Shown: one piece after another, positions 11,941 through 62,902 of the stretch
Layout of the letters: every line of letters begins with the position of its first letter
How positions within the stretch are numbered: the first letter of the stretch is position 1
Source: Mizuhopecten yessoensis
Taxonomy: Eukaryota
Direction: 5' to 3'
DNA: 64,000 nucleotides
NCBI RefSeq assembly: GCF_002113885.1
Contig: NW_018406552.1
Span: 698,308-762,307, forward strand
Notes under the pieces: model-generated
What the model saw: only the letters and a program-made list of their open reading frames with translations
Told to the model about the DNA's origin: nothing
Databases searched by the model: none
Translations under genes and position numbers: made by a program

Positions 11941-12000
11941 ATGCGCATGGACACTTTTCTATATAAGTATATAAGAACATTTTAATCTTATCATATTCAC
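11941..12000 (+). promoter_or_regulatory. Putative core promoter of CILP-like gene A
   Basis: ATGCGCATG (11941-11949), TATATAAG twice (11960, 11968) and TCATATT ~30 nt downstream, just 5' of the ATG. The same arrangement occurs upstream of gene B. Confidence 0.5.
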
Positions 12001-12010
12001 CCACTCTAGA

Positions 12011-15000
12011 ATGGAGAAATCACCGTATGCTGTAAAAGGGTTCAGCGATGAACCTAGCGTTTCCACAACAACGGTGGTAAAGGGGGGATTCAACACCAAG
12101 AAGTTGGTGCTGATCGTCGGATCAGTTATTGCCGTCGGAGTTATTGCAGCTGTCGGTGTTGGGGTAGGCGTCGCCGTCCTCAATAAAGGTTCGTGTTGAT
12201 ATTTATTAAGTTTGTAAATACGAATAAATAGTTGTAATAACCTTTTAAGAGATAGTTTTCTTTTTAGTTTATTAGAAATATCAGTCACTTACTCTAAATA
12301 ACAACGTTAATGATCATTATCAAATACTGTTAGTTTAAGTATACTCTATTCCATTAGAATGTGTTAAATTTCAAGTAAAGATATTACAATATTTAATAAC
12401 AATTAAATCAATGCTTAAACTAGAAGTATATTATTTTGTTTACAAAAACTCAATATAGTTAAATGGTATATTTGCCAAGTGCTACATGACTGTATTGGTT
12501 AATCATCTAAATATATATAATTTAAATTATTTTACAATTTTAGTGTTCTTATTTTTCACATTAATACTTTATAGTTTATTCAGCGATGAACCATACTCGT
12601 CAAATTAAAATACATACGCACAATTTTAAGCTCAATTACTGTAAAGGTGTCAATGCCTTGAATGCTTTACATTTGAAATTACTGATAAGATGTCCAGTCG
12701 AAATATTTAAAAAGATTGACTATATGTATGTTATTATTCCATTATAACAAATAATAATAATATACAACATTTTAATATTACAACATGAACACATTGTAAG
12801 AAATAAAAGGGTTCCCACGTTAGCGTTTTGTTTACTTTAAAATTATTGTTTTGTTTAATCACTTTTTCTATGAGTTCTTTACAGAAAAAAACCCATTCCC
12901 GCCTTTTTTATAATGGAATTAACCTGTAATACGTCTCCTTTAACGTCATCATGTAGTTTATTTGAATTTTGTTTGAATAGAATGCATCCCCTGTAGACTA
13001 TTTATCATTTTTTCAATCTTTTTTTTTGCTTTGTACACTATGTCTCTTTAATTGGATGCAATCGGTTTGGTTCCTTTATTTGTTCAACCATTGTGTTTTA
13101 TCGGTCTATCAGAAAATACTGAAGCTGAATAACTGTCATAGTGAAACGATGTGTTGTTCCAACTATTTCCCCATGATATTGATTCTAACTTAAGACTTAT
13201 CATTTCAAAGTATTCGACGTTATTTATTTTCTGGTCTTGATTTGTGTAGATAGGAAAATTATTAGTGAAATCATTTAAAACATAGTTAATTTGTTTTGAA
13301 AAATTGAGGTTTATTGCCTTTGACGTTTGAAAATGTTTTATTTAAATTTATGGCAGAACAAATAACGATCACTGGAATAGATTTTTCTATAACGTTCGAG
13401 GAACAAATTTATCATAATTAGGCTTGTTCAAAAGCTGCTGTAATGTATAGTCTACATCTGCATTTGTCTCTGTTATGCAAATTTTGAAAAAAAAAGTATT
13501 TTCTCCATGGTAACACTATTCATTGTTATTGATAAAATAGTTTCTTGTAATTAAGTAAAAAGTAAAACAAAACAAAAACCCGAACCGTTTCTGTTCATTA
13601 GATGATGCATCGAACGAGGGAGGAGGTACGACGCCGTCACCAAAAAGAGGTAAGCTAGTCTTATTCATCAGAACGAAAATTGATAATGTATATTCTTACA
13701 TATTTGCATCTTTTAAGAGTAGGACGAGTAGATTCCTTTGTTACTGCATACATCACACATCTTAGAATAGAAAAGCGTAAGGTAACGTCGAAGTCAATGT
13801 AACCTATAAAACACACGCAATGCCAGTGAAAGGAATGTTTTGTCTGTCTAAAACTATGCACATATAACAACACCACATATGGTGTTTATATACATATCAA
13901 AGTGTTGAATACTGATGTGACTGATCGTACACACACGTTTGAGGGTATGATTGGACGTGCATGTTTACACCATTCAAGTTAGTGTTTTACCCGTTTTGTG
14001 GGCAAAATTCTTATCCTTTAATTTTGTTCCGGGCAAAAATCAAGGCTAACCTTCAAAAGTGTTTCTTAAAATCAAATGGTCAATATTCAATGGTGGGTAA
14101 GCTAATTAAATTGAACATTAAGACTTAATGCGATCTACACACTTTGTTTGATTTTTTTACTATCTTCGATCATAATTTTTTTATGAAAACAAGTTTTGTT
14201 TTGTCTTAGCTTTTGCAATCGTCAACAAACCTTTTAAAGTGTTTGAAAGGATTTTTTTAAATACTTCATTGTTCAAGTAATCATATAATCATATTCTTCA
14301 GAACAAACTTGATACATTTAATATATATTGTAGATAGTAATGCTAATGTCAGTTTTACACATTATTACGACAGACCCTATTGACGGTGAATGGACACACT
14401 GGGACAAGTGGTCTGACTGTTCAGTAACTTGTGGAGGGGGAACACAAGTAAGGAGGCGAACATGTGGTGCCCCTCCCCCGTTCTTTGGAGGAAAGGTCTG
14501 TCCTGGGAAAGATATTCAGACTCGAGAATGCTCGAAATGGAATTGCCCAGGTATTTTTTTATTGCTCATTTAGCCACAGAAATCTGCATTGAATTAAAAA
14601 AAGGTGGGGGTTAACGTTGGGGGCGGTGTTATACTATACAAATAATATACTGAAAGTTCGAAAATTCTCAGAATGACATATCTGGATTAAGTTGATTTTG
14701 GTTTCAAGCATAAATATGTCAAAACATTGAACTAATAATTATGTACAATGCATACACCATCGTAAAGGAAATTATTTATTCTTTAAAATGAGCTAGGAAC
14801 ACTTGTTTCATGACTTTGAGAATAATATTGATAGTGAGATGTTGAGTATATTGGGTTATAGTATACCACCCCTCCACTTTAAGTCGAGACAGATACCTGT
14901 GATTCGACATATAGATTCTAAATTGATGTTCTTTCTCACATATAATCAAAACGTTATATATATGATTTCTGCCCAAACGATATAAACAAAAAATTAATGT

Positions 15001-37500: not shown

Positions 37501-40500
37501 ATTAAATTCCCTATATATGGTCTCATGAAGCACTGGATATACATGTTTCGGGTTGGTGAATATTTCAGTCACAAACATACAACTTAGATGTTATTATACT
37601 GGCAAGTCATTTAATTATATTTACCATTGCCTGTCATTTGAACTGTATTTCCATACCACATTCAAATGATTTTTATATAGGCTATGATGTCATGAGCCGA
37701 TTGTTAACGTCATAATTAGTTTGACATTATATTTGTTACGTTGGATACCACTTTCCCTCTCTGGACAGATGATCATCCTATTTATTATGATATATTATAT
37801 TTTATTCATTAAACAAGCTTTAACGTAAATTGCATTATTTGAACTAAACGCTGAAAAAAAATGAAATGTCTATGAGAGAAACAGAATAAAAAAGGTAAAT
37901 TTAAATGGACAATAGCCAAATTTAAACTAAGGCGCGATTCATATTGTCTATGAACGCCAGCTGAAAGAAGTTCAATGTTTTATATGACATTGTGTAATAA
38001 TGATTAATGCCGATATCAGTGATGTCATGATTCATGATAATTGTTTTCCAGGACGCAGGTTTCATGTGTTGCAAAGAGAAAAAAAAAGTTTATTTTTATT
38101 TTTGAAATGATAAAAAACGTCGTAAGTTATAACATGTGTCTTTATATATTTTGATTACTATTTAAATAGAATAATATAAACATGACAGCAAAGCGTCGAT
38201 ATTTATTCAAAGATAAGGGACGGGTCGCCTCGATAAATTGAGAAGTTCGCACTGCCCTTATTACGTCTTTGCTTATAGGACTTACACAACTTAATCATTT
38301 AATATATGTTATTATTACGCTTTTGAGGTAATAGCGTTAATATTTGAAGTACAACACTAGTGACAACTGTCTAGATTCACAGATACATACCTGCCAAAGG
38401 CTTCAAAAGGCTTCAAAAGGCATTTTTTGGTGAGTTTAGTGCCAAATAAGAGCGCTACAGTCGTCTGCTTTAAACAGCCAGAAGTTTACAAGCAAAACCT
38501 GTTAAGTGGGACGGGAACACCCCCTGACATTTTACCCCATATCAATCCGCCATCACATATTAAAATCTACTAAAACTATATATGTTTCTAAAGTTCAATA
38601 TCTGTAGCTTTCTTTCAATGTAAAATATGTCAACAATTACCTATTTAAATCACTCAGAGGCACTGTATTAAACCGGAACAAATTTTAGGTCGGGGTTACA
38701 ATCGTATGAAACACTTGCTGATTGGCTGATTTAGTTGTGTGAGTCCTTATATTGATATGTAGATGATACGCAATCAACGAATATTTGTTCGGATTCAGCA
38801 GTATTAGATCATATTGTTAATAATATACACATATTGATCTAATTCATCTTTTGTGATCTGATATATCATATTGCTTTCTTGTTTTGTTTTGTCTTCTTTA
38901 TTTGGTTTCTACTACTTCAACGATATGAAATTGCTACTTGGTTACTGTGTTATTTGTTGTGATATATGTCATTGTTTATGCGTATTATTTTTTTAAGTGG
39001 ATTACATCAAACATTTTTCAAATTCCGTTGTCCTCAATGTCGCTATTACTTCTTTACTTATATCATTTTATGCACACACAAAAAAAAAGTTATGATACAC
39101 TTTGTTCATTTTAAGAATGTAAATAATCAGTCATACCGAACGAGGTGTTTCTGATAGGAATTGTTTCATACAGGTAATGAAGGAATTGATTAGCTTTTCA
39201 ATCTTTAACCGTTGGCACATCCAGATCTTTGTGAAAGAATAGTTTTTTATTAAGTATTTTGAATATAACTTAAACAACGTTTAAAAAATAGGTATAAAGA
39301 TGGAAAACAAATATCACAAGACTTGAGCTCTGGAACACTGAGGTTACCTAACCTACAAAAAATGGACGAGGGGATTTACTCATGTATGGCAGAGTCTGAA
39401 GCTGGAATCGTCAAATCAGAAAGCGTGCTGGTCAATGTGAAAGGTAACTGGTCTTGATCTACAGTATTCCTATGTATATATGCCACGCGTGACTTTTATT
39501 TATTTTCAAAATCTATTTACTCCAAGGATTGAGACCTTTTGATGACATTCTATCGGGAAAATGATGAGCAATTGCATTTCAAAATTGCGCATGAGACATC
39601 TTAAATTTGTTAAAACTATTGAGCTCGCTCTTAATTGGCTAATATTGCTTTGAACAATTATTAACAGTGAAATTCATAAATCACCATGATAATATGGAGC
39701 TGTTGCCTCCTTTACATCTTAATAACAAATGTTTGTAATCTAAATTGATTGCTTAAAATTGTATAAAAAGAAGATCCAGCAATGTTTTAAATAAACAGTT
39801 TACCATACTTTAATGGCACACATTCTCATCTTTACGTTCATGGTGTCACATATGATGTACACACAGATGCACAAATACATTATATTTCGTCCTACGAAAG
39901 CTATGATTTTGGCTTACTAAATTCTACACGTTTGTTACGATTGCCATTCTATTGTCTATCCAGATGTTTCAAAGGACACGTGTGACAAGTATCCCGTATC
40001 AAAGAAAGAGAGATTACCTGCTGGATGTTTTGCTACAGTCAACGGTGTTCAGCAAAATGAAGTAGATATCGGACAATGTGTTCAACTACCGTGCATCACA
40101 TCGACAGACATTGATAATGGGACATGTGAAGAATGGTGGCCGTCAAAATGCTGCAATGTCGAAACAGTTGATAGAATCGAGGTTACATGCCCAGACTTTA
40201 CGTATTCATTAAATAAAATCGAAACATGTGGTTGCAGTTTGGGAACAACTGTTACAAGAGTAACAGCATTTGCCTATGGTATTAGGAATGGAACACGTGT
40301 ACCTTTCCAAAGAGGGAAAGTATTTGTTGATGGAGGCAAACTCACATATTCAAGTTCATCTGGAATGCTTTCTTTCAGTATTCCTTTTGAAAAGACAGAA
40401 GTTACTCTTTCCCTTCAGGAGGACATCAAGGGAGAGTTCCTGGACTCGATTAAGACATTGAAGTTAACTCCTGGAAAAATGATGACCGTGAACGTTATAT

Positions 40501-43204
40501 TACCATTACGGCCAATCCCTGTATCATTCAATACCAGAATGGGATTAAGCATCCCCCTCAATAATGTAGATGGTGCTGACAGAGTGGCAACGGTTTCTAT
40601 TCCTTCAGACTCTATGTTGGATAAAGACGGTAACAAATATGAAGGTGCGGCTAATGCTTTTGTTAACTTCATGGATCCAAGAAAACTCGAGGATCTGCAG
40701 GCCGCTGACGGAAGTTTCACGACTTTAGATGACAACGGAAATGCAGCACCTCTTGAAACATTCGGAATGTTTCGTATGCATTTTGAGGATAACTCAGGTA
40801 GTGAATTGTCCCTTTCTGGACCAATAACTACACAGATGGATGCTAGTTTGTTCAATATATCACAAGACAAGGATGGAAATCCGGATTTATCAATGTGGCA
40901 CCTGGATCCAAACACCGGAAAATGGGTAGAACAGGGAGCATTCCGATATGTTCAAACCCAGGGGAAGCGTAGATTGTTAGCAAAAACATTGATTGAAGGA
41001 ACGATTGATCCCAGTAGCATCCCTAAAATAGATTTGATGTATACGTCAGTAACATCGAAAACAATAAGCCGTCCGATCTACTCTAATTGTGATAAAAACC
41101 GCATAATTGGTTATACGTACAGCAGATATATACAGAAGAATCCACCCGCACCTAAAGACGATGCCTGCTATGTCAGGGTTCGAACATACACTGACTTCAC
41201 ACTCACAGATTATTTGAAAGGAGTGACTGTAACTGCTATTACAAAGGAACTGAACGGTCCTCGTTTTAAAGGCATCAGTACATCATCAACTGATGAAAAC
41301 GGCATTGCGTGCGTGGAAATATTCTGCAACTCCATTGTGTATCTGTACACGACGTTTGGAACTCAGATGTACGCTACTGATCAGCACAGCCTTCCTGACA
41401 ATTATCCGTTCAAGAACATTCAAAATTTAACACAAGTACAGTTCACGTCCATAGACCCGTACATTAATCAGCCTCGAAGTGACAAAATGTACAGCCCTGC
41501 TTATGATTTCAAAAAGAAACCACAATGTGAAAAGCCTTCCTTTTCTGATGGACTTTTTCAATTTGCTCCGATCAAAAAGGAAAATAGACTAGAGACATCT
41601 CTTAGAATAAATGTCCTTGACCAAAGACTGGCCTGGTATACAAGACCTGTTGAAGATCCACTACATAAATCATGCTTCATAAAGTTGAATATTAAGGTAA
41701 ATAAAGATGTTGATGAATTATATTCATTTTTTTGCGATGAAGTAATGTTATATATTTAGATCAGAGGGAACGCATAATATTTGGTAGCATTTTTTATGTG
41801 TCTTTACAACATCATTTAAGATACCCTGTTTCTATTTCAACGAATAATAATAAATCCGATTAACTTGTCTATTGTCTGATAAAGAATGTAACCAGATTTT
41901 TTTGAAATATAAATTATAAATGTTAAGGTGTTCTACACCAGTTTTTAGTTTCATCAACCGCTTATTTCAAATAAATGCATTTATAGTTGGTATAGATTGA
42001 CATTTGATTAAAAATATGCATTTAAGAGACTGAAGTTGAGATTTGTTCAAAACAGGTTTAATCCGTCACAGCTTAGTGAAAAGGATTTACAAGATATATT
42101 ATATCTTATAGTATTCATTCGTGTCATTACCCATTATTTATTGTCATTATTAGTTGTTTTTGCAACATGAAATATTTCTATTTTAATTGACAAAGTATCA
42201 ACCACATGAACAAAATATGGTTTTCTATTTAAGCAGAATTTGTTCTTTATATAACCAATATTGAGGTATTTTTAAAAATGTTTGTTAACAAAATACCAAT
42301 AGTTAACTGATTAAATATGCCGCGTGACATGTATACCTTTGCGAATTAATTGAACATTCATTGCTTTCTTTTTCAGTCAAACATTCACAGTTTTGACATA
42401 ATCAGCAAGAGCTTCATACAGGATGACCCCTCACAACGTGATGAGTATGGAACTTACTTTACATCTCCCTACTGGGATGAGACCACAGATCGCCGGTACT
42501 CCAAAGCGGCATGTATTGAGTTCCGATGTTCCGGGCTGGTTGTGGACGGGGCAACGAAAACACAGAATGTACCGACATTGGTGTACATCTACGTGGCGAG
42601 CGACGAAGGAGCAAGGTGCACTATCGAGTAAGTATATACCAAAATAATACGCGTTTCATGAAGACTTGCATTGGTTTGATATACAATGTAATAACAAGGT
42701 TCGATATTAAAGATAGCTTTAACATTTTGTTATATACCAACCGTTAGTGATATATAGCCATTGTTTATCGCAAAGTTTCAAATGCTTAGATGGTATTGTG
42801 TTCTATTTTGTTGTTAACTATATACGTAGTTATCATATAAAGCACATGTCATATTACTCATAATACATATTGCATTTCATACAAGAAATCAAAGGGCCAA
42901 CAAATCTCCATGTAATGCATACTTCGTTTTGAAATATTAAATGACACTCATAAAGATTGTTACTTTAATTATGTATGTTTTGTACAGTTCCAGTTCCGTT
43001 GCCGTTAATCAAACCGGAATGGGAAATAGCTATGTATTTTTGGCTAACCCGAGAGATCAATATGGCCAGCAATATGGAGTTTTTATCAGAAACCAGCCGG
43101 CTGATGACGTCAGACAGATGTGTGAAAGTGGGACAACATCCGGTAGTGTTTCCTCTACGATGAAACCTGACAAGAACCCAGCTTTCCAGTTAACGTGCAT
43201 ATAA
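31514..43204 (+). CDS. CILP-like protein B, ~1071 aa, tandem paralogue of A, type II membrane-anchored. Exons: 31514-31727, 33648-33695, 33963-34139, 35000-35314, 37042-37150, 39292-39443, 39964-41696, 42377-42627, 42988-43204
   Basis: Same nine-exon structure and phases as gene A. Exons 2-6 and 8 have identical lengths (48, 177, 315, 109, 152, 251 nt). Total 3216 nt, open frame, same domain order and motifs. A second possible acceptor 6 nt downstream exists for the last exon. Confidence 0.9.
38275..38751. mobile_element. Possible MITE in intron 5 of gene B
   Basis: Imperfect ~23-bp inverted repeats ATAGGACTTACACAACTTAATCA / TGATTTAGTTGTGTGAGTCCTTAT. Confidence 0.5.
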
Positions 43205-44398: not shown

Positions 44399-45243
44399 CA
44401 GTTGTGTGACCGCACAACGCACCAAAAATACCGTGCACACACCGTTCATACATCGTTCACACACCGTCCGCACATCGTCTACAGATGGTGCGCACAACTG
44501 GGCGATTTAACAATCGTTCGCCCCGTTGTGCGCTTCCCTCCTCACAACTGTGCGATTTGGTACAATTTGTTGATCAATATTACGGAATGAAAAAAACCGT
44601 AAACTGTATATCTTACTGTAATTTTTCATCAAAATAATTAAGATTACGTTCAATTTTACAATGCGTGTAGAACAATATACAGTGACCGTTAGACTGTCAA
44701 TACTGGGGATTTGGCTCCTAGCTAGGTAACAGAACAGGTAAATAACGATTTGATGAGTGACCGGAGTTTTACCTGGCCTGTACCTGACACATATAGCTGC
44801 TATGTGATACCGTATGACCGTTATGAAAACACATCTGTACGTTGAGTATTTGTTATTTGCATTCGTTCTGATCTAGAGCTCCCCTTACCTTGGGGAGTTA
44901 CGTAAGTGCCCCGGGCGGGGAAAAACTACGGTTGAGATACAAAGTGGCTATGGTCGTTTAAAAAACACTGAAGCACCATTTCTAAATTTAAGAAAGTATA
45001 GACAGAAGATAAGCTTATAGATGTAGCTAGAATATAGAAACATACTCAACAATCAAGTTTATATGTTTAAACACCAAACCGTATATATTGTTAAGTCATT
45101 CCTCAATTTACACCAACCACGATTGTTATCGCACAACGTTCGTCGATCGTCCGCACAAATGTGCGCAAGCAATGATCGTCCAATTTTTATCGTTCACACT
45201 CCGTGCACACATCGTGCGCACACGTTGTGCGATCCCACAACTG
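44399..45243. mobile_element. Tc1/mariner-type MITE (~845 bp) between the 3' ends of genes B and C
   Basis: TA|CAGTTGTGTGACCGCACAACG ... CGTTGTGCGATCCCACAACTG|TA: TA target duplication, TIR starting CAGT, and subterminal CGT(G/T)CAC/GCAC-rich repeats at both ends. Confidence 0.8.
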
Positions 45244-45770
45244 TATATATATATACATGGATTGTCTTAACCGAAGTGGTTTTTGAGTTTGCAGGTTCAT
45301 AAAATACCTTCAATGTTTGTGAAATCGAGAAGAGAAAATTTGTTTTTTCAAGAATAGGGAAATTGAAGTAAATATCTCTTTCATTAACATCATTACATTA
45401 TGCTAGTGGAACAAAAGTTATATCGAAATATGTCTCAGCCAATCATAGCGGCCACGGCGGCGGCGGCGGCAATATTTGATGTCTGATCGAGAAAAAATAA
45501 TACACATCTGCATATGTATATCAATATATACTTATGTGAAGTTTCATAAGTATGCATCGCAGGAAGCGTCCGATAAACATTTGGAAGAAAAAGAAGAAAA
45601 CATGGGTCCAATCATGTAGTTCTCATAATATAGTAATGAAGAAAACATGCAAAATATCGTAATGTATTTTATATTTTATTTATTCTAAATTGAATATGGG
45701 TTCGCGTATGAAATATTAATGAATCTTAACAAGTTCATTAAATTACATGTACAAGTACACACAAACTCAA

Positions 45771-48700: not shown

Positions 48701-50375
48701 ATTACGAAGGGGTGCGCAAAATTTTAAGGAATGATATCGGTTTTGTACGTATCTTCACATTATTTATTTGATTATAATGATATACATAGAAATCTCGGTC
48801 AAATCCAAGTAATATCACCTCATCAAAATGAGAACCAGGAAACCATGACAACACCAATGAGTGTGATACATACTACTGTGTTGTATGTTTGACCGTCAGT
48901 AGTCGTCATTTATCAAAGAAATCATGATATGCAATACTGAATCAACTGCGATGTAAACATCAAAGGCTTAGAAAGTATGATGCTTATCGTATAGTTAATT
49001 AGTACGTCTTCCATGAAAATAACGTTGCTTGTAAAACTCGAGATATAGGCTGTTGTTGTTCATGACGAAAAAACGATCGACGTGGTCATTGAATTTCTTG
49101 TTATTTATAATAGTACATCCTCGAAATATACTAACGTGAAATTGAAATATTTGATAAGGTTGTGTAACCATTCCTTATGATCTCATTAATAAATTCAACT
49201 TCATATGAGGCACAGTAAACAAGTGGTAAGACGCCGGGCTCGTGAACCAATTGTTTACCGTGCGAGTCACGTCACGTTGTATCTTTGAACAAGATACTTT
49301 TCTCCGCTTGCTCCAGTCTACTCAGCTGAAAAATATTACTTGACTAGGCAGTGATAGAATTGTTGATTGCTAGATGTGAGTGCACAGAACCGGCTCTATG
49401 CTCCCCATGGAGTTGACAAAGATATTGGCTGGTTGCAAAGGCCCAATAACCACCTTTGAGACAATCTACGACCTAGGTTTTGATTAAGCGGTATATAAGA
49501 ACATCGCATTATTAATTATTATTATTTATGAAAACAAAAATAAGTTGGACTGAATGGGTAAATAATTCGTTCCCATAGAAATGCATAAAGTTTGAAAAAT
49601 ATAGCTTGCCAACTCGTAAGAAAACCATATAAATAATAGTCAACCAGCTGCTCAATCAGTCTCACAAGTTCGAAATCAATATGTTTTTATTTGGAGTTTG
49701 TTTTTATCACGAAATATGACTTTTGTTTTTTTTTTGCAAACTTCAATTATTACTTTTATATGATTGACACAGTTATCAAGAGGGGAATCAGTTGTGCCAG
49801 GTGTTGTATAAAACAATCTGATTTCCCATTTGGTTTGTGTTTACAAATTTGGATGTTTACATGTGGTTGTTAGAGTCAAAGCTTTATCGTGGTTTATTTC
49901 AAGGATAATATTTCAAAGCCAATTTTTTTTTCTTCATTTACCTATCTATATAACGTCTCATTGGCTTTTGAAAACAATATGAACATTTATGAAAAGTTAG
50001 ATAAATATGTTACAAAGTTACAAAGTTTGTAGTATTTATCAAAGAGGTGTGATTGATAACAAGATGCCTTTTGTAACACAGACCGTTTTCTTTATTGCAC
50101 ATTTAATTATGCAAAGTTACTTACGTCAAATTTCAGAATAAACAGTAAGTTGAGTTGAAGATGTGAACCATAGGAAAACAGTTTCCATTGATTTAAATAG
50201 GGATACATAGATTAATAGAATAAAAACATGAGATTTCCTTATTTCAGTAAAAACATATGAACATTTAACTTTAAATATTTTGCATGAATGTCTCACCTTG
50301 TTGACCGATGACAAAATGTTGTGATACAAGTGCAACCAATAGCAAATAGCGAACGATCACGAAACAGCAAGTCAT
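45771..50375 (-). CDS. Secreted CILP C-terminal-fragment-only protein (gene C), ~415 aa. Exons: 50297-50375, 47789-48471, 46826-47058, 45771-46023
   Basis: Exon 1 is signal-peptide-like, MTCCFVIVRYLLLVALVSQHFVIGQQ, with a phase-1 GTGAGA donor. Exons 2-4 carry CYVNVKV, NGNACVRTIC, GPVY, SWYP, CYIKVKVQ|, RAACIEYRC, YGPNAGIY, LCFTG and AFQFTC, matching the C-terminal part of genes A/B with the same phase-0 and phase-2 introns. 1248 nt in frame; nine N-glycosylation sequons. Confidence 0.85.
49207..49527 (+). mobile_element. tRNA-derived SINE (family 1), second copy, in intron 1 of gene C
   Basis: Collinear with the reverse complement of 1657-1989 (GAGGCACAGTA...CCAGTCTACTCAGCTG...TATGCTCCCC..GGAGTTGA.AAAGATATTGGCTGGTTGC...); ATT-repeat tail. 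Confidence 0.75.
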
Positions 50376-52234
50376 TGTTCTGTAATAGATGCAAAATCAA
50401 TTTATGATCTATTTATTATTCTAGAATGTGTTATAAGACTGTGATATACATGTAGATGTAAAAGAAAAATACAAACCTTTTGCGTGTATCCTTCGACACA
50501 ATCTTATGAAGTCTATTTGGTGTCCTCTGAGAGTGTGAATATAATGCAGATTTCCGAGCAGTATCTATGAACACTTCAAGATAAAGTTCGACCTAAGATA
50601 AGGCCGAACATCTCGGTCAAGTTATTGTCATTCATCATTTTGGAGCTGAACAATCGACCATTTCAGTTTGTTTTCTTATAATGTGATATCTTTTAATCAG
50701 GTTTGCTCAAAGAACTGATAATATCTTAAAATTTGTTGCAAATAATGCTACTGCTTTGTTGAAGATATGATTTATGTTATCATAGATAAGTGCATTGGTG
50801 TAAATATATGAATCGTCATGAGAGAAAACAACTATCGTTTCTAAAATAGCATTAAAGTCTCATTAACTTTATGGCCGATAACAAAATGATACAAACTTAA
50901 TTAATATTCATATGCATATTTATATACTCTTTTTATAGAGTTGATAATTTTCGTCTGCAATGATAAAAAGGAAATGAATTTACAAGGTAATTATGGTAAA
51001 CAATATATTTTTGTTCTGTTTCTATTAATCGCTGGGACATTTCCGATGATTTATGATATTACCACTACACTTAAGCTGCGTGAATACATCTGAATAAGTG
51101 ATTTCTCCCTATTTTGGTATCGTAGAACAACAAAATGATGTCTATGTAAACAGTTAAAGGTAGACCAATTATAGTAATTAATTATTAATCATCAACGTTT
51201 TTACCTGTATCTTTACATTGTTGCTGTGTTAAACTGGTTTTGCATCACCTTTATTTATATATTTTGGCACAGTTGGTGAACTCGCTTGGCTGATTGTTCG
51301 TTGAAATCGTCTAACTAAACAGCATGTAACAACAAAATTAAATGATAACAAAATACACCAATACTTTAAGTATTAAAGTTTTATTAATTACAAATTGCAA
51401 AATCATATTACATTTGCAATAGACACTAGGCAATTCAACAACAAAACATATCATCATTTTTATAATATTAAGTACCAGTACATGCTTACAAAGACAAAAA
51501 AAGAAGTAAATATTGCACTATTATATATCACATTGACAAAAACAGAAAATGAAATATAGCAGCATAAAATATGTAGAAAAAAATAATATAGCACTTATAC
51601 AAGCAGAATTGCAAAGTGGTCTCCAAGAAACCTTATGTTTGAAGTTGTAATAATACATCGATTAGAGTTGAATATGTTATTAAAATAATATTGATATCAT
51701 TTTATATTCATTGTATCATCAGCACCAGCTTTAAATTGATATAAACTACGTTAATATCAAAGGAAACACAGGTAAATCAAGGAAATACAAATTAACCACT
51801 TTTACGACGTGTTAAAATACCACCAGTAATTGAAGGGCTATATGAAGATACTGCTTTTTAGTGAATATTACCTGTAGGCGCTCATCATTTAGGTCACATA
51901 TATGGTATGAACCTTCTTATTTCAATACCATATGTTTAACATATTACAATTCAATATGCTTACAGTAAAATTGAAAATGAAATAAATACATAAAAGTCTA
52001 CATACTGCGAAAGAACATAATTATAAGCTTGTTTCTCAAGAGTGGGCGAACGGACCTTGTACATGGTATGACCTTTTTACAAATATAGTTGTTTTATCTC
52101 TTGCGTGATTGTTTGCACTGGGCATTTACTCTTATCTTAGAACATGTCGGCTCCATATGTTCAAACAGCAATTGTTCACGTCTATAGATATGCTTTTTTT
52201 ATTGTTCCATGACACAATTTTGTAATTTCATTCT

Positions 52235-52540
52235 TTGGATACATATAAACTTGATAAAAATATTGACATTAATATAAGTACAATTCTAATTTGGGTCACA
52301 GGAGATACTAATAAAACAAAACCAACTAACATCATCATTACATACACTAAATACTACATATTCTGTAATGCAAAGAAAAGAAATCTCTTAATAATAGGAT
52401 TGAAAGAATACCTAACTCAAACATTTACACACGAAATTACCTTGTCACAAAAAATATGCAAATCCAAAAATTCAACAAAACTTGGAATGAATGGAAAAAC
52501 CTATTTACCTAGTAAAAACCTAGTCGAAAAAAATATTTGA
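52235..52540 (+). mobile_element. 3'-terminal relic of an L1/Tx1-like LINE ORF2
   Basis: NIIITYTKYYIF..K...GLKEYL....EI.L then, after a frameshift, QKFNKTWNEW: the typical pattern of L1/Tx1 ORF2 C-termini. Confidence 0.5.
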
Positions 52541-53204
52541 AAATCATAGCCAAGTGATGAACTTCAAATAGTTGGTCACCCATATACCCTTATGAATTAC
52601 AATAATTAAATATTGTTGTCTTTTTTATATGTATTTGTAGCCTTTTATACACATTAATATATACAATGTACATATAGATGATTAAGTGTTAACTTGCTAA
52701 TATACATGTGTTTTATACACCCAAAAAAGGCATAATGGACTCTGTTGAGATGTATTTGTTGTGTATAGTACAGGTCCATATGTATATGTGAATATATGTA
52801 TAGTATACATGTGTATGTGTAGCAGTGTACAAACGTGTGCATATCCGCATAAAATACAAACAAGTTTATACAAAGTAAAACGATTTTTATTGTTTTCTTC
52901 TGTTTATATGTCAAATTGTAAACTTGTACAAGTATAACATATGACAATACCAAATTGTGTACTGTTTTCTTATATATTATCAAATCCTTACCTATTAATC
53001 TCAATAAAATAAATCCCCTTTAAAGATTAAAAAATACCCGTGTGCTTCTTGTTATCTGTGTCGCCTGAATGACACGTATAGGTAACAACCTATCCCATTT
53101 GCACGTGCAAATACCACCAATAGCGACACCTATTGGCGTATATCATAACAAAGAGAAAATAAGTACACCCTAATTCCTACCGTCAACCGGTTGAAATGAT
53201 ATTA

Positions 53205-53520
53205 TATTATTTTATACTGTATACCTATAATGTATTACAATGTCAAATTGTTTACTGTATAACTATAACATATATATCACAAAGCCAAATTGTGTACTGT
53301 TCAAGTATCATGTATCACAATTCAAAATAGCATACTGTATAAGTATAACATCTCACAATTCAAAATTGTATAATGTATAACTATAACATATCACCAGGCA
53401 AAATTGTTTACTGTATACGTATAACATTTCACAATGCCAAATAATATACTGTACAAGTATAACATCTCACAAAATTATGTACTGTATAAGAATAATGTAT
53501 CTCATTGTCAAATTGTATAG
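53205..53520. repeat. ~38-bp degenerate minisatellite
   Basis: About 8 units resembling CAAATTGT(G/T)TACTGTATAA(C/G)TATAACAT(A/C)TCACAA; two more units near 52908-52965. Confidence 0.8.
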
Positions 53521-53559
53521 TGCATTCCTTTAATGACTAATGTGCGTACATCATACGAG

Positions 53560-53790
53560 CGTATCTGCGTGTGTGTGTATGTGCGTGCATATGCACATGT
53601 GTGTGTATAGATGTGCGTACATATGTACGTGCGTGCATGTGGAATTGTGTATGTGCGTATGTATGTAAACTTTGTATGTGTGTGGGTGTATGTATGTATG
53701 TATGCATGCATTTATGTATGTATGTATGTATGTTATGTATGTATGTTATATATTATGTTAAGTATGAATGCATGCATGTTTGTGTGTTGG
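53560..53790. repeat. TG/TATG-rich low-complexity repeat
   Basis: (TG)n and (TATG)n runs; explains the Cys/Met/Val/Tyr ORFs at 53508-53945. Confidence 0.9.
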
Positions 53791-54794
53791 TGTTTATGTT
53801 CACATGTAACTGTTTTACTATGTATTACGATAAAATATATATGTTTTTTGTCTATGAATAAAACAAAAACAAAACAAAAAATTGTATATACGCAATGACA
53901 GGACGTTGGATAACATAAATGTTGGATAAGATAAGTTTTATGCAAAATTTTCTACATGGGTTATTTGATACCGTGCCTTCTGTCCATGACATCATCACCG
54001 TATTAAGTAATGATATTTCGATTTGAAGTTTCTTGGTTATACTTTGAAACTTACAAAATGTTCAAATAAATATCAGTTTTATAAATTCATTTCGTTTCAG
54101 ACTATAAGTGTTTATGATATAAATTTATATTATGCTCATAATCATATTTTTGGAGAGGGATCATGGATACCTTTCTAAAGTCATTTTAATGACTACAGGG
54201 AATGTGTTTGCTCTTTAATTTTTATGAGATGGATTAATTTGACGCCGACTTCTAACTGTATTGAAAAAAAATCATTTTCTTCTCATTGTAACACAGCGGG
54301 CATGAAAATATTTCGCATCCGTCATGACAGTATGGTAAATATACCGCAGCGATAACGCACAAGATCAAAAGGTCGTAATGAGCGAGCGGGCGGACAACGG
54401 ACAGTCGGACGGATTTGTAGCTAATGTGTTGTGTTCTCTGGTCAAGTTTTTGAATTATTTATGTTATTGTATTTTTTAGCTTTTGAAATTTCCATTGTTT
54501 CCTTTTGTATTTTATTTATCAACTTTATTTATATTGTATTATTGCGTTGTCGCATATTAAATGTAACTGTGATATACTTCGTCTCTGTAATGTTTGCTTA
54601 AGCATAGAACACTCTTTATTGCTAGTCAGATAAGGTATTGATCCCAAACACTTGAATTAAAAAATACCATAAATCATTAACGTGATGTTTATAGCAACCA
54701 CTCAAGACGTTTCCTTTTCATTTAAGTCCACAAATGCACTATACATGCATACCGGATTGTATGCACATGTTATCGGTGTAGCTCTTTTTCCAAG

Positions 54795-57700
54795 ATGTCA
54801 CATACAGCATTTATATGCCTTGTTTCTGCCTTGATTCTTGCTGGTGTTTGTATCAGGTAATTTTGAAAGAATGATAGTATATATTTGTGACACAGTTATA
54901 CTTGCAATTGCAACTTTTGTTGATATGTTTTTTACAATAATGTGTATTGTATTTCAGATTATCGTCAGCAACCAAGCCAACACATCGGATTCGACGTCAA
55001 ACATCGTATGTAGATATGTTTAACGATTCGTGTTTTTACATTATGAGTACATATTTGATATTTCTTGTCGAATATTTGTTTCAGTGATAATTCAGACCGT
55101 CACAATAAAATATTGAAAACTATTTATTCTATAAAAGTGATATATTTCACTGAGTGACAAATATCAAAATGATAGTGAAAATATCGTTTTCATCTGTTTT
55201 CACCAATCGAAACACTGATAACAAATCACCAGGAAAACTCACTTATCCTGATGATGAAAAATCTGCCCAGAATAATCACCTGTTACCAACATGGGGGACC
55301 ATAATCTGGGGGAAAGACAACGTTTAATTCCATACTCAATTTTTATTTTCATACAAACCAACACACTATGCAGGTCAGTTGTTTTTGATCGGGGGGAAAG
55401 TCAAATGAGTCATCTCTGACAGTGACAATGGCGCTTCCAATTATAAACCACTCATAGTATTCTGAGTTGATATGACGGGACATTTATCAAATAATTGAAT
55501 TTTGATAGTAATTTCCATAGTCTTTGATGAAAATGCGAACTTAAGTACCTACTATTTTAACATAAGTAATTATAGGAATTTAATAATGAGTTTTTATAAA
55601 ATACCAAAATATTGACACATATTTTGCTGCGTATGATTGTTTATTGTCAGTTTCATGTGTCGCTACACGTTCCAGGGTAGGTTTTTGCTGGTAAAAAGTG
55701 TAGTACTCGTGAAAGATACCAATATGTCAGCAAAACTCGTAAAATACATTTCATTATCACAAAAGGACTAATTTATATTCTCTGAAACTGAATTCGAAGC
55801 TTATTAAAACTTAAAAAAAAAAAAATCAATGGTGACATTTAAAAACATTATGTTGAAATAGGATATGCATTTATTTAATCAAACTATTAATCTGTTTCAA
55901 CTGTTATAACACTCTTAATGGTGTTTGGACAGGATATATTCCAATTATGAAGAAAATATGTACAACCATAAGCCTTGACATTCAAATTATCTAATAAAAT
56001 ATGTTTTGCCTGTTTTGATTAAGGCTTTGGTGGAGAACTTCATCTTCTAGTTCTTCAGGATATCAAGGTAAATACTTTCAGTGTATTCCAAAAAACGTTA
56101 ACGATGACTTCCATCCAAAGAGAAGATTGAACGTTTAGAAATTCTCATTTAGCACTTTGGTCGCAGATAACACAAGTTGATATACTTCAAACATTCAAAC
56201 ATTGTGTATGAAGATTTAACAAAGATTTTAATTTATCAATGGATTTAGAAAAGAAAATTGTCTTTAACTTCCAGTCGACCGAAGTATACACTTAAGCATG
56301 AACACAATATGTTTGCAGCTACACTTCTTTTTGAATTTGTATTTTTTATATTTCTGTCTTGCTTGATGGGCGGATTGCCGCTTTTTCTTTTGCCTGCACT
56401 GTCGCTTATATATCTCTGCTTACCTATTTATATAAGCGATACATATCCAATGAAAATATGTTTGTTTGAATCAAGTGTCTGAATTAGCCGTACCGTCCTT
56501 ACTATGTATGATACCTATATATATATTTGTGTCTTTGTGTGCGTGCAGGTTATTTACATGTAGTTCCCAAAGAATTTCAAAGACAATTATCTCCTTTATT
56601 CTTATTACGGAAACACGTTTACCTGTCAAATGAATTATAAGAACATAATTTTTTTTCACGTTACTAAGGCGTCATAATAAAATCACCTGTTGGAAATCTT
56701 GTTCTCTATAATTTTATGGATTTTTTTTTATCTATTAAACAGATTTTAGTGAATGCAATTAACTATTATTATATATTTACTGGTGAAATGTCAGGAATTA
56801 ATAATTAAAAAATATGAATATTATATCTAATATGTGAAGATATGGCTTTGAATATTGTCAATGCAGAACGGTAGTTTCTGTAAAGATTTTTTTTATTAAA
56901 AGTCAGATGATTCGACGGCAGAATAATTGGTTGTATAGATAAACCTTTGAAACAAATGTACGGTATGAATATAACTACAAAATTGATATAGTTTTTGTTG
57001 GGAAATCTTACCAGTTGATAGCAGCAAACGGCAGAATTGCAGTAAGTTACTGTTCATTAAATAGGAAAAGCACATGACCTTCTTCTTGAATCTGGACACT
57101 TATTACTGATATCGGTGTGCCTGTAACAAGGAAACTACCTTGCGTTGAAGTACCGTTGAAGTTATGGCAGCATTTCCACAATAGCACACTTCTCAAAAAT
57201 CGCAGAACCAATGTCAGCCACTGTTGACAAAACCATCATTTGGAAATGTGTAAAAGAAAGTGTAATAGAATGTTTAATAGAACGTGTTAAATTGATGACT
57301 TAAACACCCCGGAAACTAAGTGCGAGATACAAAAGCGGCAACTTTGAATATCTGTTTAAAAGATTTTACCTTTAGATCAAGTACTATCAGAGCTGAATTA
57401 ACGGTTATTGCATTTTTACCTATTACATGTAGTCACCAATTTTGTCGCTGAAAGGGGTCATATTTCCAATCAAAACAAATAGGCTGGAGACAAGGATATT
57501 GGTCCCACTAGGTCGCTGACTCTTCAGAGTCCTTGTGGGGGAACCCAGGAGGGTTAAATATTGCTTTTTTAAAAACAAATACAGATATACTTTTGTATGA
57601 AGATATGTAAAGGGTTAATTATTAAACCTTTTTCTAGACGTTATGATAAATGCGGGAGTAGGGCCTTTGAAGTTGGCAAACGGGACCTGTTCTATATGTA

Positions 57701-60700
57701 TGGAAATAACACAACTTTCATTTAGCAGGGGTAAGATAATTTAACACATGCAACATCGGTTGTATTGTAAGAACCGGAGAAAATCATTTTATTTTAAAGT
57801 TCTCGATTTAATTTAACCGAGTTACCGAAATTATCAGACGACCTTCATTATACATTTCAAATACTTCTCTTATATTTTTCTGAAATTTGCCAGTCTATTT
57901 TTTTATATATATATATGGATGTATCAGGGCTCATACTCAATATTTTGTTTGAATTTGCTCACTTGTTACCCAAATGCGGCCTTACCTAACGTCGATGGTT
58001 GCATATCGTATTGTGACAAAAACAAAATAACTTAATGTAGAATAAACCCTTTGCAAGTCTTAGCAGTTAGAGACGTATTATGCTTATGGTCTTGATACGA
58101 CGCACTGAAATAGGTCAAATTACCAAAGGGCAAATGCCATATTCCTGTTGGCCTCTGGTCTTTGGATCTATGATAGAATACAATTGGAGCTGTTTAATTC
58201 CGTCAGGCATTGTGATATATTTTATTAAACACCCAACATCTTGTGATTAATATGAGCAAGATCCGTAAATAAAACAATAAATGTGTCTGTTCTGCTGTCT
58301 ATCACTGAAGTACTTATAGACGCTTACATATAATGTTTTGCAGTTTGTTATGATCAAACATATTTTTTTATCTAGATTTGTTAGTTTTCTATATCAATAA
58401 AATTATGTTGTATAATACACTAATAGAATAGCTATTTATAAAGAAAGAATGGTGTCTACAAAACAAGTTTTCCTTTTTGGAATTGTTTACATTTTGTCGA
58501 AATCATGCTGAAAGTAGCAGTCTGTATTAACTATCATAGCGAAGATTTCTTCTTTTTGAAAACTTCTAAATAATGTTATTATTTGCATATTTGACCGTAA
58601 TTTTGATTTTTGACACTAAAAACCTATATGGTATTAATACTACATAAAAAGGCCGCTCACACCTAAATATGTGCGTCTCATCAGATGGTGTTTGACATTG
58701 GCTGTTTCCCCTAATAGAATTCTGTTAACTTTTTTCAGAAAATACCTGTATACAAAAATGCTACAATGGTGGGGTATGCTACAACATAAACAAATGTAGA
58801 TGCACCTCACAATACAAGGGTACGACTTGTGAAGAACGTAAGTAATACAGTCATTAATTATGTTGGTATGATGAAATATTAGAGACATTATGAGACCTTT
58901 ATATTTTTATTTATGTAAATGCAATTGTTATGTTCAAACGCATAATTTAATCTTTATTATAGTCTCATATCCCAACTTCAACAACAATTTGTTATTGGTT
59001 ATAGTTAGGGATCTGCCACTACAAAATTAGAAAACATGATTTTCACAATTGCTGGCTGCTGCATTTGAATCATTTTTTTTTTCAGCTATTTGTAATGCAG
59101 CATGCAGTATACATGGCAACTGTATTCTTCCGAATGTATGCCAGTGTAGTACTGGATATGAAGGCAAACTTTGTGACTCAGGTTAATATACACATTTATA
59201 CGTTTTTTAGAAAAGAAAGGATGTACAAAACCAAAGGTACTACAAGTGTATGAGAGAAATTTGGCCAACAATCAATTTATTATACTTTTTGTACCATCAT
59301 TACTACTTTCGCTTCATGAATATCCAATAAATGTCAGAAGCCATATCATGTTTACCTTGATGGCCACAGTAATCGCTTTTGGGTGACACACATTTGTAAT
59401 GAATTCGAAACTAAGCAGTGCTCTGGGTTTTTTAAATTCATAAATTAAAAGTTTTGAGATACCTTCCCCTCTGTTTCATCAGTAGTTTAGACCTACTTGG
59501 ATTTCAATTATTTTCTGCCCCTAGCATCACCGATAAGACCTCAAAGGTGAAACAGCTGTATGACACAGTACAATTAATTCTGGGCATACTGTATCTGTTA
59601 CTAAATCTCAAAGGCGCAATCACCTCTGAGTGTGTGTTACGTTCGTCTTTTTACCTAATCATTATGTTTTTCCAACTCATACCAAATTTGAAGATATTCT
59701 GATTTTCCACTATATATGTGATTGTTTATTGTATCTGAAGACGTCTCTGTTCATATTTCACTGGTCGGAGATAAAGAATTTCCTTAAAAAAGATATGCAG
59801 GATTTAAAGGACTCGTAAGGCTAAGTTATGAATTGTTGAATATATTGAAACGTTTAATGGGTATATTGTTAAGCAAGTAATGCTGCACCCGTTCTCAACG
59901 TACCATATAGTAACTGTTACATAGCAGAAATGGAGTTTACCCGTTGAAATATTGTATGATATTGTTGTGCCCAAAATGTGCAATACATACTATTTGTGAA
60001 CTATTTGAAACTCAAAAACGCATATTAAGACGATGAATCGGATATTCCAAAAAATCTAAAAGAATCTTTCTATTTACATCCTAAAGCTATCTGTGTTCCT
60101 CAATGTCAAAATGGTGGCAACTGTTCAATGCCGGGGGAGTGTACATGTGACTATGAATATACTGGGGGATCATGCGAACAAGGTACTGTATAAAATAAAT
60201 TACAAATTTTGTATTGTAAGCTGTTCGTTTACGCTTGCATATTTTAAAATAATATATTTTGAGGAGATAAATGGTGTATTTCTAACATTTTTAGCAATAT
60301 ATTGATTTTCCTGATACATTAATTGAATTTAAAGCATGTTGTATAAATTATAGTATTCTATTAAAAACATAACACATTTGTCGACATACAAGGTAAAAAT
60401 CGGAACTATACGACAAAATACAAGATCACAGGAGATGCATACCAGAGAGAAAGAAAATTATATCGATTTATAGCTGTTTTTGTATGATGTATCTTCTTGT
60501 TGTTTTTTACTATCATTGGGATTGCATAAGAACTATTGTATATGTTGGAAAAGACTTTGAATCACAAACCATTTATCTTCAAAAACTGCTTCTACTTACA
60601 AGATTTTTTTGATTTTTTTTTAAATAATAGCTATTTGCAAGAATGAATGTTTGAATGGAGGAAAATGCACTTCACCAGATGTTTGTAAATGCACCAAGGG

Positions 60701-62902
60701 ATATACAGGATTTGTTTGCGAGAGTGGTAAGTATATGAAGTATATTGGAATGTTTTGTTTGATGTCTCGCCATCGGATCAGAACGAGACCCTTTCTGTTG
60801 ATATAAACGGTATGATTTTAAAGGGACTGTCAACACATTTTACATGGCATTATCTGGTGAATATTGAATAAATTATGAATATTTTTTATCCCTCTTCGTA
60901 AATATAAAGCTTAACCCAGGCATTAATGTATATAAGGGTACATTTCATTTACACTGTTACTATTAGGTTATGTTGCAAGTAAATATGTACGCGCAGTGTC
61001 TATTTAAGCAAGTAGTGTTGGAATCCAATTTATTTTTGCACTTTAGGAAGTCTCAAACAGTTTTTCCAAATGTAGAAGCATATATTGCAACTTGGGGCAG
61101 GGGTTCAATTTAAGTTTATTGTCTGTTAGGAAGGTGTTTTCGAAGAAACATCGAAATCTGCAGGGTCCCAATTTTAACTACTAACAACATTGCTAATTTG
61201 TAATTTACCGTGGTGTCTAATGTTTTGCTGGCTTAGGTTGTTTGTCATTGAAATTGCATACTGTATTTTGATAAAATGACGTTGTGTTTGTATGATTACA
61301 ATTCAGCTATTTGTACGAAACCCTGTTTGAATGGAGGTTCTTGTATTGCACCGAACATATGTGCATGTGCTTCTGGGTACTTGGGAGCCTTCTGTGAACT
61401 CGGTAAGGTATTAATTACATATTCATGTGTCGTATATAATAAGGAAAAGCATTGTCTTTGAATAAAAAATATGTTATTGCAGTGTACTTTACACTATGTA
61501 TACAAGTAACTAATAATATGATCGTTTTTTCATAAGGTGGGGACCCAGACTCTTTCCTGAGCCCTTCCTATCACTTCACCAATAAACAAACGGGTAACTT
61601 ATTGTCATGGTATGAGGAGGAGCCACTCTCAATATTTGGCAAAAGTTGTCTTGTAAAGGTTGAAATTTTGGTAAGAGAATATAAAGACTTTGAAATATTT
61701 GAAAATATGAAAACAGCTTAATTAAATCAGAAGTAAATAATTCAGTTTGCGATTAAATTGTTGTTACCATCAATTACAAAATAGTTGCAATCATCTGTTA
61801 CGTCAACAATTATTGACTGATACGTTTATCTCTCTCCTGCTTACTGACTAATGTAATACACACACATAAGTTATATAGAATACAAAACTAGCAATTATGG
61901 CTTTGTTTGACTAAATACTCTTTAAAAAAAACCAGAAAAATCATCTTAATACATTTGACATAGGAATATGATATTTAATCAGGAATTTTGTTTTTGAAAT
62001 GTGATTATAGCAGGCTATGTTTAACATGTTTGATATTAATTCGATCTACATATTGCTTTTTAATTTTTAACCTGTGAACCGGTAACTTATAATATTAATA
62101 ATATTAAACATCCTTTTTTTTCGATGTAGAATGCAGATGTAGAAACCTTACTGACAGCAACAAGCTACACATCAACTGGAGAACTCTTTGGAAATTATAC
62201 GGTTGGTGGAGCCGATCATGGTCTGCGAAGTAGCGGAACTAATCGGGCTGCGTGTCTTGAGTTCCGGTGTCCATCAGACATTCGTGAGGATTCTGTTATT
62301 GTCAATGTCACCATAGCTACATCCCGGCAAAACTGCAATATTACGTAAGTGTGTCGCTTAAGATTCAGATCGAAAGATCGATATGTGAATTGCAATGGTA
62401 TGAAAACCTAACAGCAATATGTTGTAATATTTATTATTCGTGTTGCTAATTTTTTGTTTTAAAGACTATTATTTCAGAAATTAGATATATTTGTCAGAAA
62501 TTAGATACATTGATCAGACACAAAGTTATTATTTGAGAAACTTATTTTTCCCACTTTTGCGATGCCTTTGAATCAGTAGCGGTTTTCAATATTATGTTTA
62601 GTATTAGACCGTAACACATGCGTCATCCTTCAATAGTAACCTTATGGCCCCGTTTTTGTTTCAGCAAACTGTCACCTTTATTGAATGTCATGGCTGGATA
62701 TGACAGTAACGAAAACCAAGAGGTGGCATTTCAGGTGCTACCACATAGAGATTATGGATCCATGTATGGTATATACATCACCTATGGACTTCGTCAAAGG
62801 ATACAGTATATTGGCGAAAAGATGTGCCGAAGTGGTACAAACTACGGCGGAGATAACGTTGTGCCAAGTGACGGAACTGCTTTAATTTATACTTGCAATT
62901 AG
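54795..62902 (+). CDS. Secreted 4xEGF + half CILP C-terminal module protein (gene D), ~405 aa. Exons: 54795-54856, 54958-55005, 56024-56067, 57638-57730, 59086-59181, 60087-60182, 60631-60726, 61307-61402, 61537-61670, 62130-62344, 62665-62902
   Basis: Signal peptide MSHTAFICLVSALILAGVCIRLSSA, then TKPTHRIRR. Four 96-nt phase 1-1 EGF exons (e.g. AICTKPCLNGGSCIAPNICACASGYLGAFCEL). Then SWY..SCLVKVEIL|, NRAACLEFRC, DYGSMYGIY, MCRSGT and ALIYTCN with the shared phase-0 and phase-2 introns. 1218 nt in frame. The last seven exons are firm; small exons 3-4 rest only on splice sites and phase fit. Confidence 0.8.

Follow-up and report, generated by a model that had tools for sequence, protein, structure and literature searches.

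A cluster of CILP-family genes in the scallop Mizuhopecten yessoensis carries one C-terminal module in three architectures

Why would one extracellular module be encoded, within a single gene cluster, at the end of long proteins with a predicted membrane anchor, directly behind a signal peptide, and behind a row of epidermal growth factor (EGF) repeats? This question is raised by a 64,000-nucleotide stretch of the Mizuhopecten yessoensis genome (NCBI RefSeq assembly GCF_002113885.1, contig NW_018406552.1, positions 698,308 to 762,307 of the forward strand; "the window" throughout), which contains four genes of the CILP family, here called A, B, C, and D. The C-terminal half of the vertebrate members CILP1 and CILP2, which are proteins of cartilage, disc, and cardiac fibrosis, has lost its enzyme label (PMC12839030) and has been without an agreed function since then. 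The scallop genes are best explained by an old enlargement of the CILP family in bivalves, in the course of which the C-terminal processing product came to be encoded by separate genes. We incline slightly to the view that the module is a non-catalytic extracellular binding unit, which would be delivered tethered by A and B, free by C, and on arms by D.

Protein matches place the window on M. yessoensis scaffold NEDP02003225. Models of the four genes were assembled exon by exon from its sequence, and positions are given in window coordinates. All four are intact: every intron is GT-AG, and none of the models contains an internal stop in frame, in agreement with the original prediction. B and C are arranged tail-to-tail, and C and D head-to-head. 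In gene D the exon at 56024-56067 is the least certain, its support being phase fit and the total length of 407 amino acids (aa).

12011..20742, plus strand: gene A, 1061 aa, nine coding exons, letter-identical to NCBI model P0005
12011-12188, 13602-13649, 14374-14550, 15029-15343, 15583-15691, plus strand: coding exons 1-5 of gene A
16399-16550, 17182-18908, 19074-19324, 20514-20742, plus strand: coding exons 6-9 of gene A
31514..43204, plus strand: gene B, 1071 aa, nine coding exons, letter-identical to NCBI model P0158
31514-31727, 33648-33695, 33963-34139, 35000-35314, 37042-37150, plus strand: coding exons 1-5 of gene B
39292-39443, 39964-41696, 42377-42627, 42988-43204, plus strand: coding exons 6-9 of gene B
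50375-50297 (signal peptide), 48471-47789, 47058-46826, 46023-45771, minus strand: gene C, 415 aa, four exons, letter-identical to NCBI P0001/LOC110452150
54795..62902, plus strand: gene D, 407 aa, 11 exons; the gene called there by NCBI also has 407 aa (agreement in length only)
54795-54856 (signal peptide), 54958-55005, 56024-56067, plus strand: 5' exons of gene D
58739-58837, 59086-59181, 60087-60182, 60631-60726, 61307-61402, plus strand: five EGF exons of gene D, phase-1/phase-1
61537-61670, 62130-62344, 62665-62902, plus strand: CILP_C exons of gene D

Related proteins are assigned to three subfamilies: F is full-length (as in A and B), C consists of a signal peptide followed by the CILP_8th and CILP_C domains, and D consists of a signal peptide, EGF or TSP1 arms, and CILP_C.

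Do all four proteins end in the same module? Database searches were run exon by exon or by protein identifier. The Pfam domain CILP_C (PF23599) was matched by A with 52 bits and by C with 50.5 bits (cut-off 27), and B has a precomputed match; CILP_8th is placed weakly before CILP_C in A and C. In local BLASTP comparisons, C matched B with E=3e-16, and D matched C with 4e-12 and A with 4e-5. Single exons of D had no Pfam match; the D-type protein P0027 passes the Pfam cut-off, and a D paralogue, P0015, matches the module profile with E=3e-31. The BLASTP match to C, the presence of all motifs, and the six retained cysteines place a CILP_C domain in D as well. The motifs named in the original prediction, including the spacing of C-x-[IV]-K-x-x-[IV], occur in all four genes, and in each the last two introns fall at identical residues, one in phase 0 and the next in phase 2, also as predicted. 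The near-invariant residues of CILP_C are six cysteines, a tryptophan, a lysine, a serine, and two glycines.

The architectures of C and D differ in how much of the full-length protein is kept. Gene C, which aligns to A 725-1057, was described at the outset as a signal peptide joined to the C-terminal fragment only, and both LOC110452150 and the Pfam domains (CILP_8th and CILP_C) agree with this. The segment 236-407 of D aligns to A 881-1057, so that D keeps the whole of CILP_C, the last of the two domains in C. For D, the predicted signal peptide, EGF repeats, and CILP_C end were recovered; the count of four EGF repeats was not, as the exon at 58739-58837 had been missed and there are five. 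These repeats are of the WIF1/HHIP type and have no calcium-binding consensus. Beyond the earlier description, D has two small 5' exons, one of which encodes RIRR at the end of a short pro-piece, where the protein may be cleaved.

54986..54997, plus strand: RIRR of gene D, aa 31-34, a furin-type site after the signal peptide

A and B are 72% identical and share one architecture. In A the order is N-terminal anchor, TSP1, carboxypeptidase-regulatory-like, Ig, CILP_5th, CILP, CILP_8th, and CILP_C; TSP1, Ig, CILP_5th, CILP, and CILP_8th stand in family order in both proteins, and CILP_8th scores below the cut-off in A and at the cut-off in B. The TSP1 domain of A and B carries W-x-x-W and CSVTC/CSLTC. 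A search with the full length of A was dominated by TSP1 proteins. The Mucin2_WxxW domain is absent in A and present in bird CILP2. By hydropathy, A and B begin with 31-43 polar residues followed by 26 hydrophobic ones, and do not have a cleavable signal peptide of the vertebrate type. The hydrophobic segment after a basic pair is a predicted type II signal anchor, and the claim that A and B are full-length proteins with an N-terminal membrane anchor is borne out by Pfam for the domains and, as a prediction from hydropathy, for the anchor.

12104..12181, plus strand: hydrophobic segment of gene A, 26 residues, aa 32-57, preceded by KK
31643..31720, plus strand: hydrophobic N-terminal anchor of gene B, aa 44-69

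Two exons of A and B are unusually alike. Exon 3 (TSP1; 14374-14550 versus 33963-34139) and exon 8 (CILP_C core; 19074-19324 versus 42377-42627) are 93-94% identical, with dS (synonymous divergence) of about 0.2, compared to about 2 in exons 7 and 9, and the flanking introns are unrelated. For exon 7, B is closer to a third paralogue; for exon 8 it is not. This pattern looks like exon-limited gene conversion.

How could the module be set free from A and B? Vertebrate CILP is cut into N- and C-terminal parts (PMC7251193, PMC12839030). Where deuterostomes carry the furin consensus R-X-K/R-R, the majority of full-length bivalve rows in the alignment show R[RK]LL, and the furin consensus was found neither in A nor in the F protein of the second scallop locus. 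RRLL is the optimal motif for SKI-1/site-1 protease (PMC8310232). The R-X-aliphatic-Z motif of site-1 protease substrates is present and conserved, and neighbouring dibasic sites offer an alternative cut. By analogy to vertebrate CILP, A and B may be cut at R[RK]LL, and the alignment suggests that the whole clade exchanged a furin-type for a site-1-protease-type processing motif without a change of position.

18186..18197, plus strand: RKLL of gene A, aa 662-665, a site-1-protease-type motif where deuterostomes have the furin site
40968..40979, plus strand: RRLL of gene B, aa 674-677

A cut at R[RK]LL would leave C pieces of 396 aa in A and 394 aa in B, and mature C has 391 aa; each contains 10-11 cysteines. 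Because size and starting point match, we consider C the gene-encoded counterpart of the predicted A/B processing product. Directly N-terminal of the cleavage motif, the big exon of B has a weak Pfam match (E 0.05) to the FAM171A N-terminal domain (aa 272-350 of the open reading frame 39921-41753).

Are C and D more than local fragments? Searching with a profile of the module yielded 115 representatives. Proteins of the C type are present in Ostrea edulis, Mactra, and Ruditapes, and D-type proteins in Crassostrea virginica, Mactra, Ruditapes, Mya, and the second scallop locus. The N-termini of D-type proteins consist of EGF, TSP1 plus EGF, or IgGFc-binding plus EGF, followed by CILP_C; the combination of an IgGFc-binding domain, EGF, and CILP_C is found in the sequencing-run contig P0027, a fusion with a mucus-associated domain. 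Another protein, P0030, has 1281 aa and two copies of the two-domain piece, a tandem duplication of the module. The C- and D-type genes elsewhere keep the phase-0 intron, and most also the phase-2 intron; a phase-1 intron lies directly before the retained part.

The CILP_C phylogeny was calculated from 44 rows, with three rows lacking the anchor motif left out, and was rooted at the midpoint. Each subfamily forms one side of a branch, with support of 100/99 for D, 96/95 for C, and 85/60 for F. All three lie inside a group of bivalve rows and one annelid row (100/99), and one long unlabelled row falls within C. Recent shuffling specific to scallops was rejected: the tree constraining the seven scallop rows to a single clade had a p-value of 0.001 in the approximately unbiased test (p-AU). 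Scallops and oysters separated from clams in the early Palaeozoic. Since each subfamily spans both sides of this split, the three subfamilies are about as old. The full-length form is the more widely spread, and C and D therefore probably derive from a full-length gene; the tree itself, with its midpoint root, gives no order of origin.

The ratio of nonsynonymous to synonymous divergence (dN/dS) was calculated by the Nei-Gojobori method; with dS near or above 1, the values are rough. For C versus its paralogue the ratio is 0.25 overall and 0.13 in CILP_C, and for C versus another species 0.10. The last 226 codons of D versus the paralogue give 0.19, and A versus B 0.17. The original prediction had named values near 1 for C or D as contrary to its claim; the values found, 0.1-0.25, indicate purifying selection. 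Short sequencing-run contigs from other species contain uninterrupted C-type and D-type frames, which are split by introns in the genomes, and we conclude that both types are transcribed and spliced in those species. In small M. yessoensis runs guessed to be RNA, 0.23-0.36 of the C-region words were present, which is about the exon share and a weak indication.

These results bear on the most deflationary account, that C and D arose recently by partial duplication and are being lost, or are artefacts of annotation. Their truncated architecture is what such decay would produce; however, the cross-species groups, the conserved introns, the low dN/dS, and the transcript-like contigs elsewhere speak against it. 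For practical purposes this account is already refuted, and we give it almost no credence. With the age of the subfamilies, the low dN/dS, and the match of C to the predicted A/B product, the proposal that selection acts on the C-terminal module as a unit in its own right, deployed in three architectures, is supported.

What kind of unit is it? AlphaFold2 models of C 62-408 and of the D-type domain alone (from P0015) have a predicted local distance difference test (pLDDT) of 92.5 and 91.4, respectively, and both are mainly beta. The module is thus predicted to be one or two disulfide-bonded beta-sandwiches, weakly transthyretin-like. CILP_8th matches transthyretin-like/CnaB sandwiches with Z of 6-7.7 over 80-110 residues, and CILP_C matches this class weakly, with a best Z of 5.9. 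Foldseek against PDB and viral structures returned generic beta-sandwich repeats and nothing more specific, a PDB sequence search with the CILP_C profile gave no match, and the ESM Atlas, queried by features and by structure, gave no usable match. Short mid-region matches to plant leucine-rich repeat kinases were dismissed. A CnaB-type isopeptide bond was rejected, as the conserved lysine lies on strand 1 and the last strand has no conserved Asn/Asp. An enzyme role (NPP/alkaline-phosphatase fold) was also rejected, as the models are mainly beta-sandwich and no such fold was matched. In vertebrates the NPP label has been withdrawn; CILP2 is cleaved and sits on collagen VI-containing fibrils, and no NPP activity resides in its C part (PMC12839030).

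Do the three architectures belong together? In Ostrea, the C gene and a gene for a 1063-aa CILP are arranged tail-to-tail, like B and C in the scallop. In Mactra, the D gene and a gene for a 1253-aa VWA-CILP stand head-to-head, and a further locus has D-type genes immediately before C. C and F occur together on one 91-kb contig in Ruditapes, and on a second scallop scaffold F is followed by C. Both Mactra CILP clusters, which are 15 Mb apart, are followed by a gene with a uromodulin-type D8C domain (L006:24995-27130, L011:15749-23914). With adjacency in four genera and D-type genes unlinked in two species, linkage is common but not obligatory.

Several observations weigh against the reading of one binding module delivered in three forms. 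Identity among the F, C, and D modules is no more than 21-26%, and their targets may therefore differ. No CILP gene lies within 10 kb of the D-type genes in C. virginica and Mya, and linkage may be inherited from a tandem origin. The membrane anchor is not universal, as clam full-length CILPs have a signal peptide and VWA, and fold matches with Z of at most 7.7 are generic. The low identity, the unlinked D-type genes, and the varied D-type N-termini (EGF, TSP1, IgGFc-binding) would all fit ancient duplicates that took up unrelated jobs and are neighbours only by descent. Against such a dispersal stand the F-C, F-D, and C-D adjacencies retained in four genera, which represent both branches of that bivalve divergence, and the close correspondence in size and start between C and the predicted F cleavage product. 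We regard the absence of any joint system as unlikely; it is partly compatible with a matrix-binding role for each protein.

The EGF arm of D bears on a signalling role. Database comparisons of the EGF repeats used the stretches 58741-58836 and 61309-61401; the fifth EGF had its best match to WIF1 (E 5e-18), and the order in PDB was WIF1, then fibrillin, Notch, and HHIP. A tethered precursor combined with a free form is a common design for ligands. The C piece could be a ligand or growth-factor trap released by regulated cleavage, with C as its constitutive form; D would then act as a decoy or antagonist and bind heparan sulfate through its EGF arm, as WIF1 and HHIP do. Both vertebrate CILP fragments have been reported to dampen TGF-beta/Smad3 signalling (PMC7251193). 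However, TGF-beta binding has been assigned to the N-terminal TSP1 motif, which is absent from C and from scallop D (PMC12839030, PMC7251193). The EGF arm of D is acidic (isoelectric point 5.1), which is poor for heparan binding, and no receptor-binding fold is among the structure matches. We therefore hold signalling to be rather improbable.

Extra paralogues in scallop and Mactra, the D-type protein with an IgGFc-binding domain (typical of mucus proteins), and the exon-limited homogenisation of A and B would suit mucosal immune recognition, in which the module binds microbial or particle surfaces and lineage duplications supply tethered and soluble pattern-recognition forms. Few copies were seen, dN/dS is low throughout, and neither a lectin nor a known recognition fold is conspicuous among the matches, so that we give this account little weight.

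Returning to the non-catalytic binding module, the following mechanism can be outlined. A and B would be inserted into the membrane of the endoplasmic reticulum in type II orientation. In the Golgi, either site-1 protease (at R[RK]LL) or a convertase for dibasic sites (at the neighbouring RR/KR) would cut at the vertebrate furin position, leaving a tethered TSP1-Ig stalk and a C piece of ~44.5 kDa that is released or loosely attached; we judge this sequence of steps, taken together, to be likely. Gene C would make the same ~44 kDa two-domain piece directly, without protease or tether. In D, a short pro-peptide would be taken off at RIRR, and of the two domains only the last, of ~190 aa, would be presented, on an EGF arm of the WIF1 type. 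The most probable job of the module, at about even odds, is non-catalytic binding in pericellular matrix or mucus, either to matrix polymers (such as collagen VI-type fibrils) or of the modules to each other; the three forms would position related binding surfaces on the cell, unattached within the matrix, and fixed to other matrix components. A bolder and fairly doubtful extension is a three-part, co-regulated CILP system kept for ~500 million years, in which the fragment freed by site-1 protease from the membrane-tethered precursor, its gene-encoded copy, and the EGF-armed domain join with one another or compete for one partner, which would be the conserved target of the vertebrate CILP C fragment.

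For the vertebrate proteins, the bivalves provide natural dissections: a gene for the cleavage product alone and genes for the last domain alone, all under purifying selection. These set expressible domain boundaries at ~390 aa and ~190 aa, and the stand-alone genes under purifying selection argue that the fragment is an active binding unit rather than a pro-piece.

The remainder of the locus contains the following features, of which the TATA-like boxes and initiator-like sites were read by eye.

11960..11999, plus strand: TATA-like boxes at 11960 and 11968, ~31 nt before initiator-like sites, upstream of the A ATG
31472..31506, plus strand: TATA box at 31472 and TCAGTT initiator-like site at 31501, directly before the B ATG
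29987..30130: assembly N gap, intergenic between the A stop (20742) and the B ATG (31514), flanked by poly-A runs

The TATA box and initiator-like site just upstream of its ATG give B a putative start of its own. The N gap is touched by no exon of A-D and matters only for the contiguity of A with B-C-D. NCBI also has a 1156-aa model that starts at ~8428, crosses A and the gap, and ends in B at 43204; it carries two TSP1 matches, 14 splice combinations fit it, and it may be a chimera, either an artefact or a read-through. The 5' part of a myotubularin-related gene (window 1 to ~4540, minus strand; 561 aa, PH-GRAM MTMR6-like and Myotub-related) lies head-to-head with A. As to the suggested synteny with MTMR9, no myotubularin-related neighbour was seen at the bivalve loci retrieved for comparison. 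A long inverted repeat lies in the last intron of A (19416-20045; arms of ~230 nt, 80-91% complementary) and resembles a miniature inverted-repeat transposable element (MITE). Three copies of a repeat of several hundred bases, spaced ~1.9 and 1.6 kb and with CA-rich tracts, lie between A and B (25621-29478), and minisatellites of 38 bp and 30 bp lie at 53209-53519 and 1-148.

How does the set compare with known systems? Whether the architectures were already catalogued as named families had been left open in the original prediction. Automatic labels do exist (Pfam PF23599; NCBI "CILP1-like" or "uncharacterized"); no paper on the set was found, and the literature searched, which did not cover subscription papers, held no description of a mollusc CILP set. 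Vertebrate CILP1 and CILP2 (reference: bird CILP2, P0056) resemble A and B in domain order, in the place of the basic processing site, and in the cysteine pattern of CILP_C. In contrast to them, A and B have no Mucin2_WxxW, a long N-terminal anchor, and R[RK]LL in place of RxK/RR; without WxxW and the furin consensus, and with the anchor, they are members of the CILP family, not CILP1/2 of the vertebrate type. Among the module-profile matches, no vertebrate stand-alone C- or D-type gene was present. CILP-like proteins of hemichordates (Ptychodera P0026, Glandiceps P0043/P0069) share the N-terminal anchor, TSP1, Ig, and the full CILP body; however, they keep the furin site and fall outside the bivalve group in the tree. 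The common anchor may be ancestral or convergent. The clam VWA-CILPs (Ruditapes P0013, Mya P0017, Mactra P0019) belong to the F subfamily, have the R[RK]LL motif, and are linked to C- or D-type genes, but carry a signal peptide and VWA at the N-terminus instead of an anchor.

CILP_C without the CILP body also occurs in amphioxus (Branchiostoma P0022, a signal peptide and two CILP_C) and in Saccoglossus (P0066/P0156, short TSP1 and CILP_C), each known from a single automated model. P0022 groups with full-length rows of the amphioxus type and thus has an independent origin. The likeness to transthyretin-like/CnaB domains is below the level that implies kinship or function, and CILP_C is larger and disulfide-bonded. 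D resembles the EGF arms of WIF1 and HHIP in its five non-calcium EGF repeats, with the fifth matching WIF1 best. Unlike WIF1 and HHIP, it has no WIF or HHIP ligand-binding domain in the fold search; CILP_C stands in that place, C-terminal to the EGF repeats. The scallop set is apparently an undescribed variant of a known family, a redeployment of domains and not a new kind of system.

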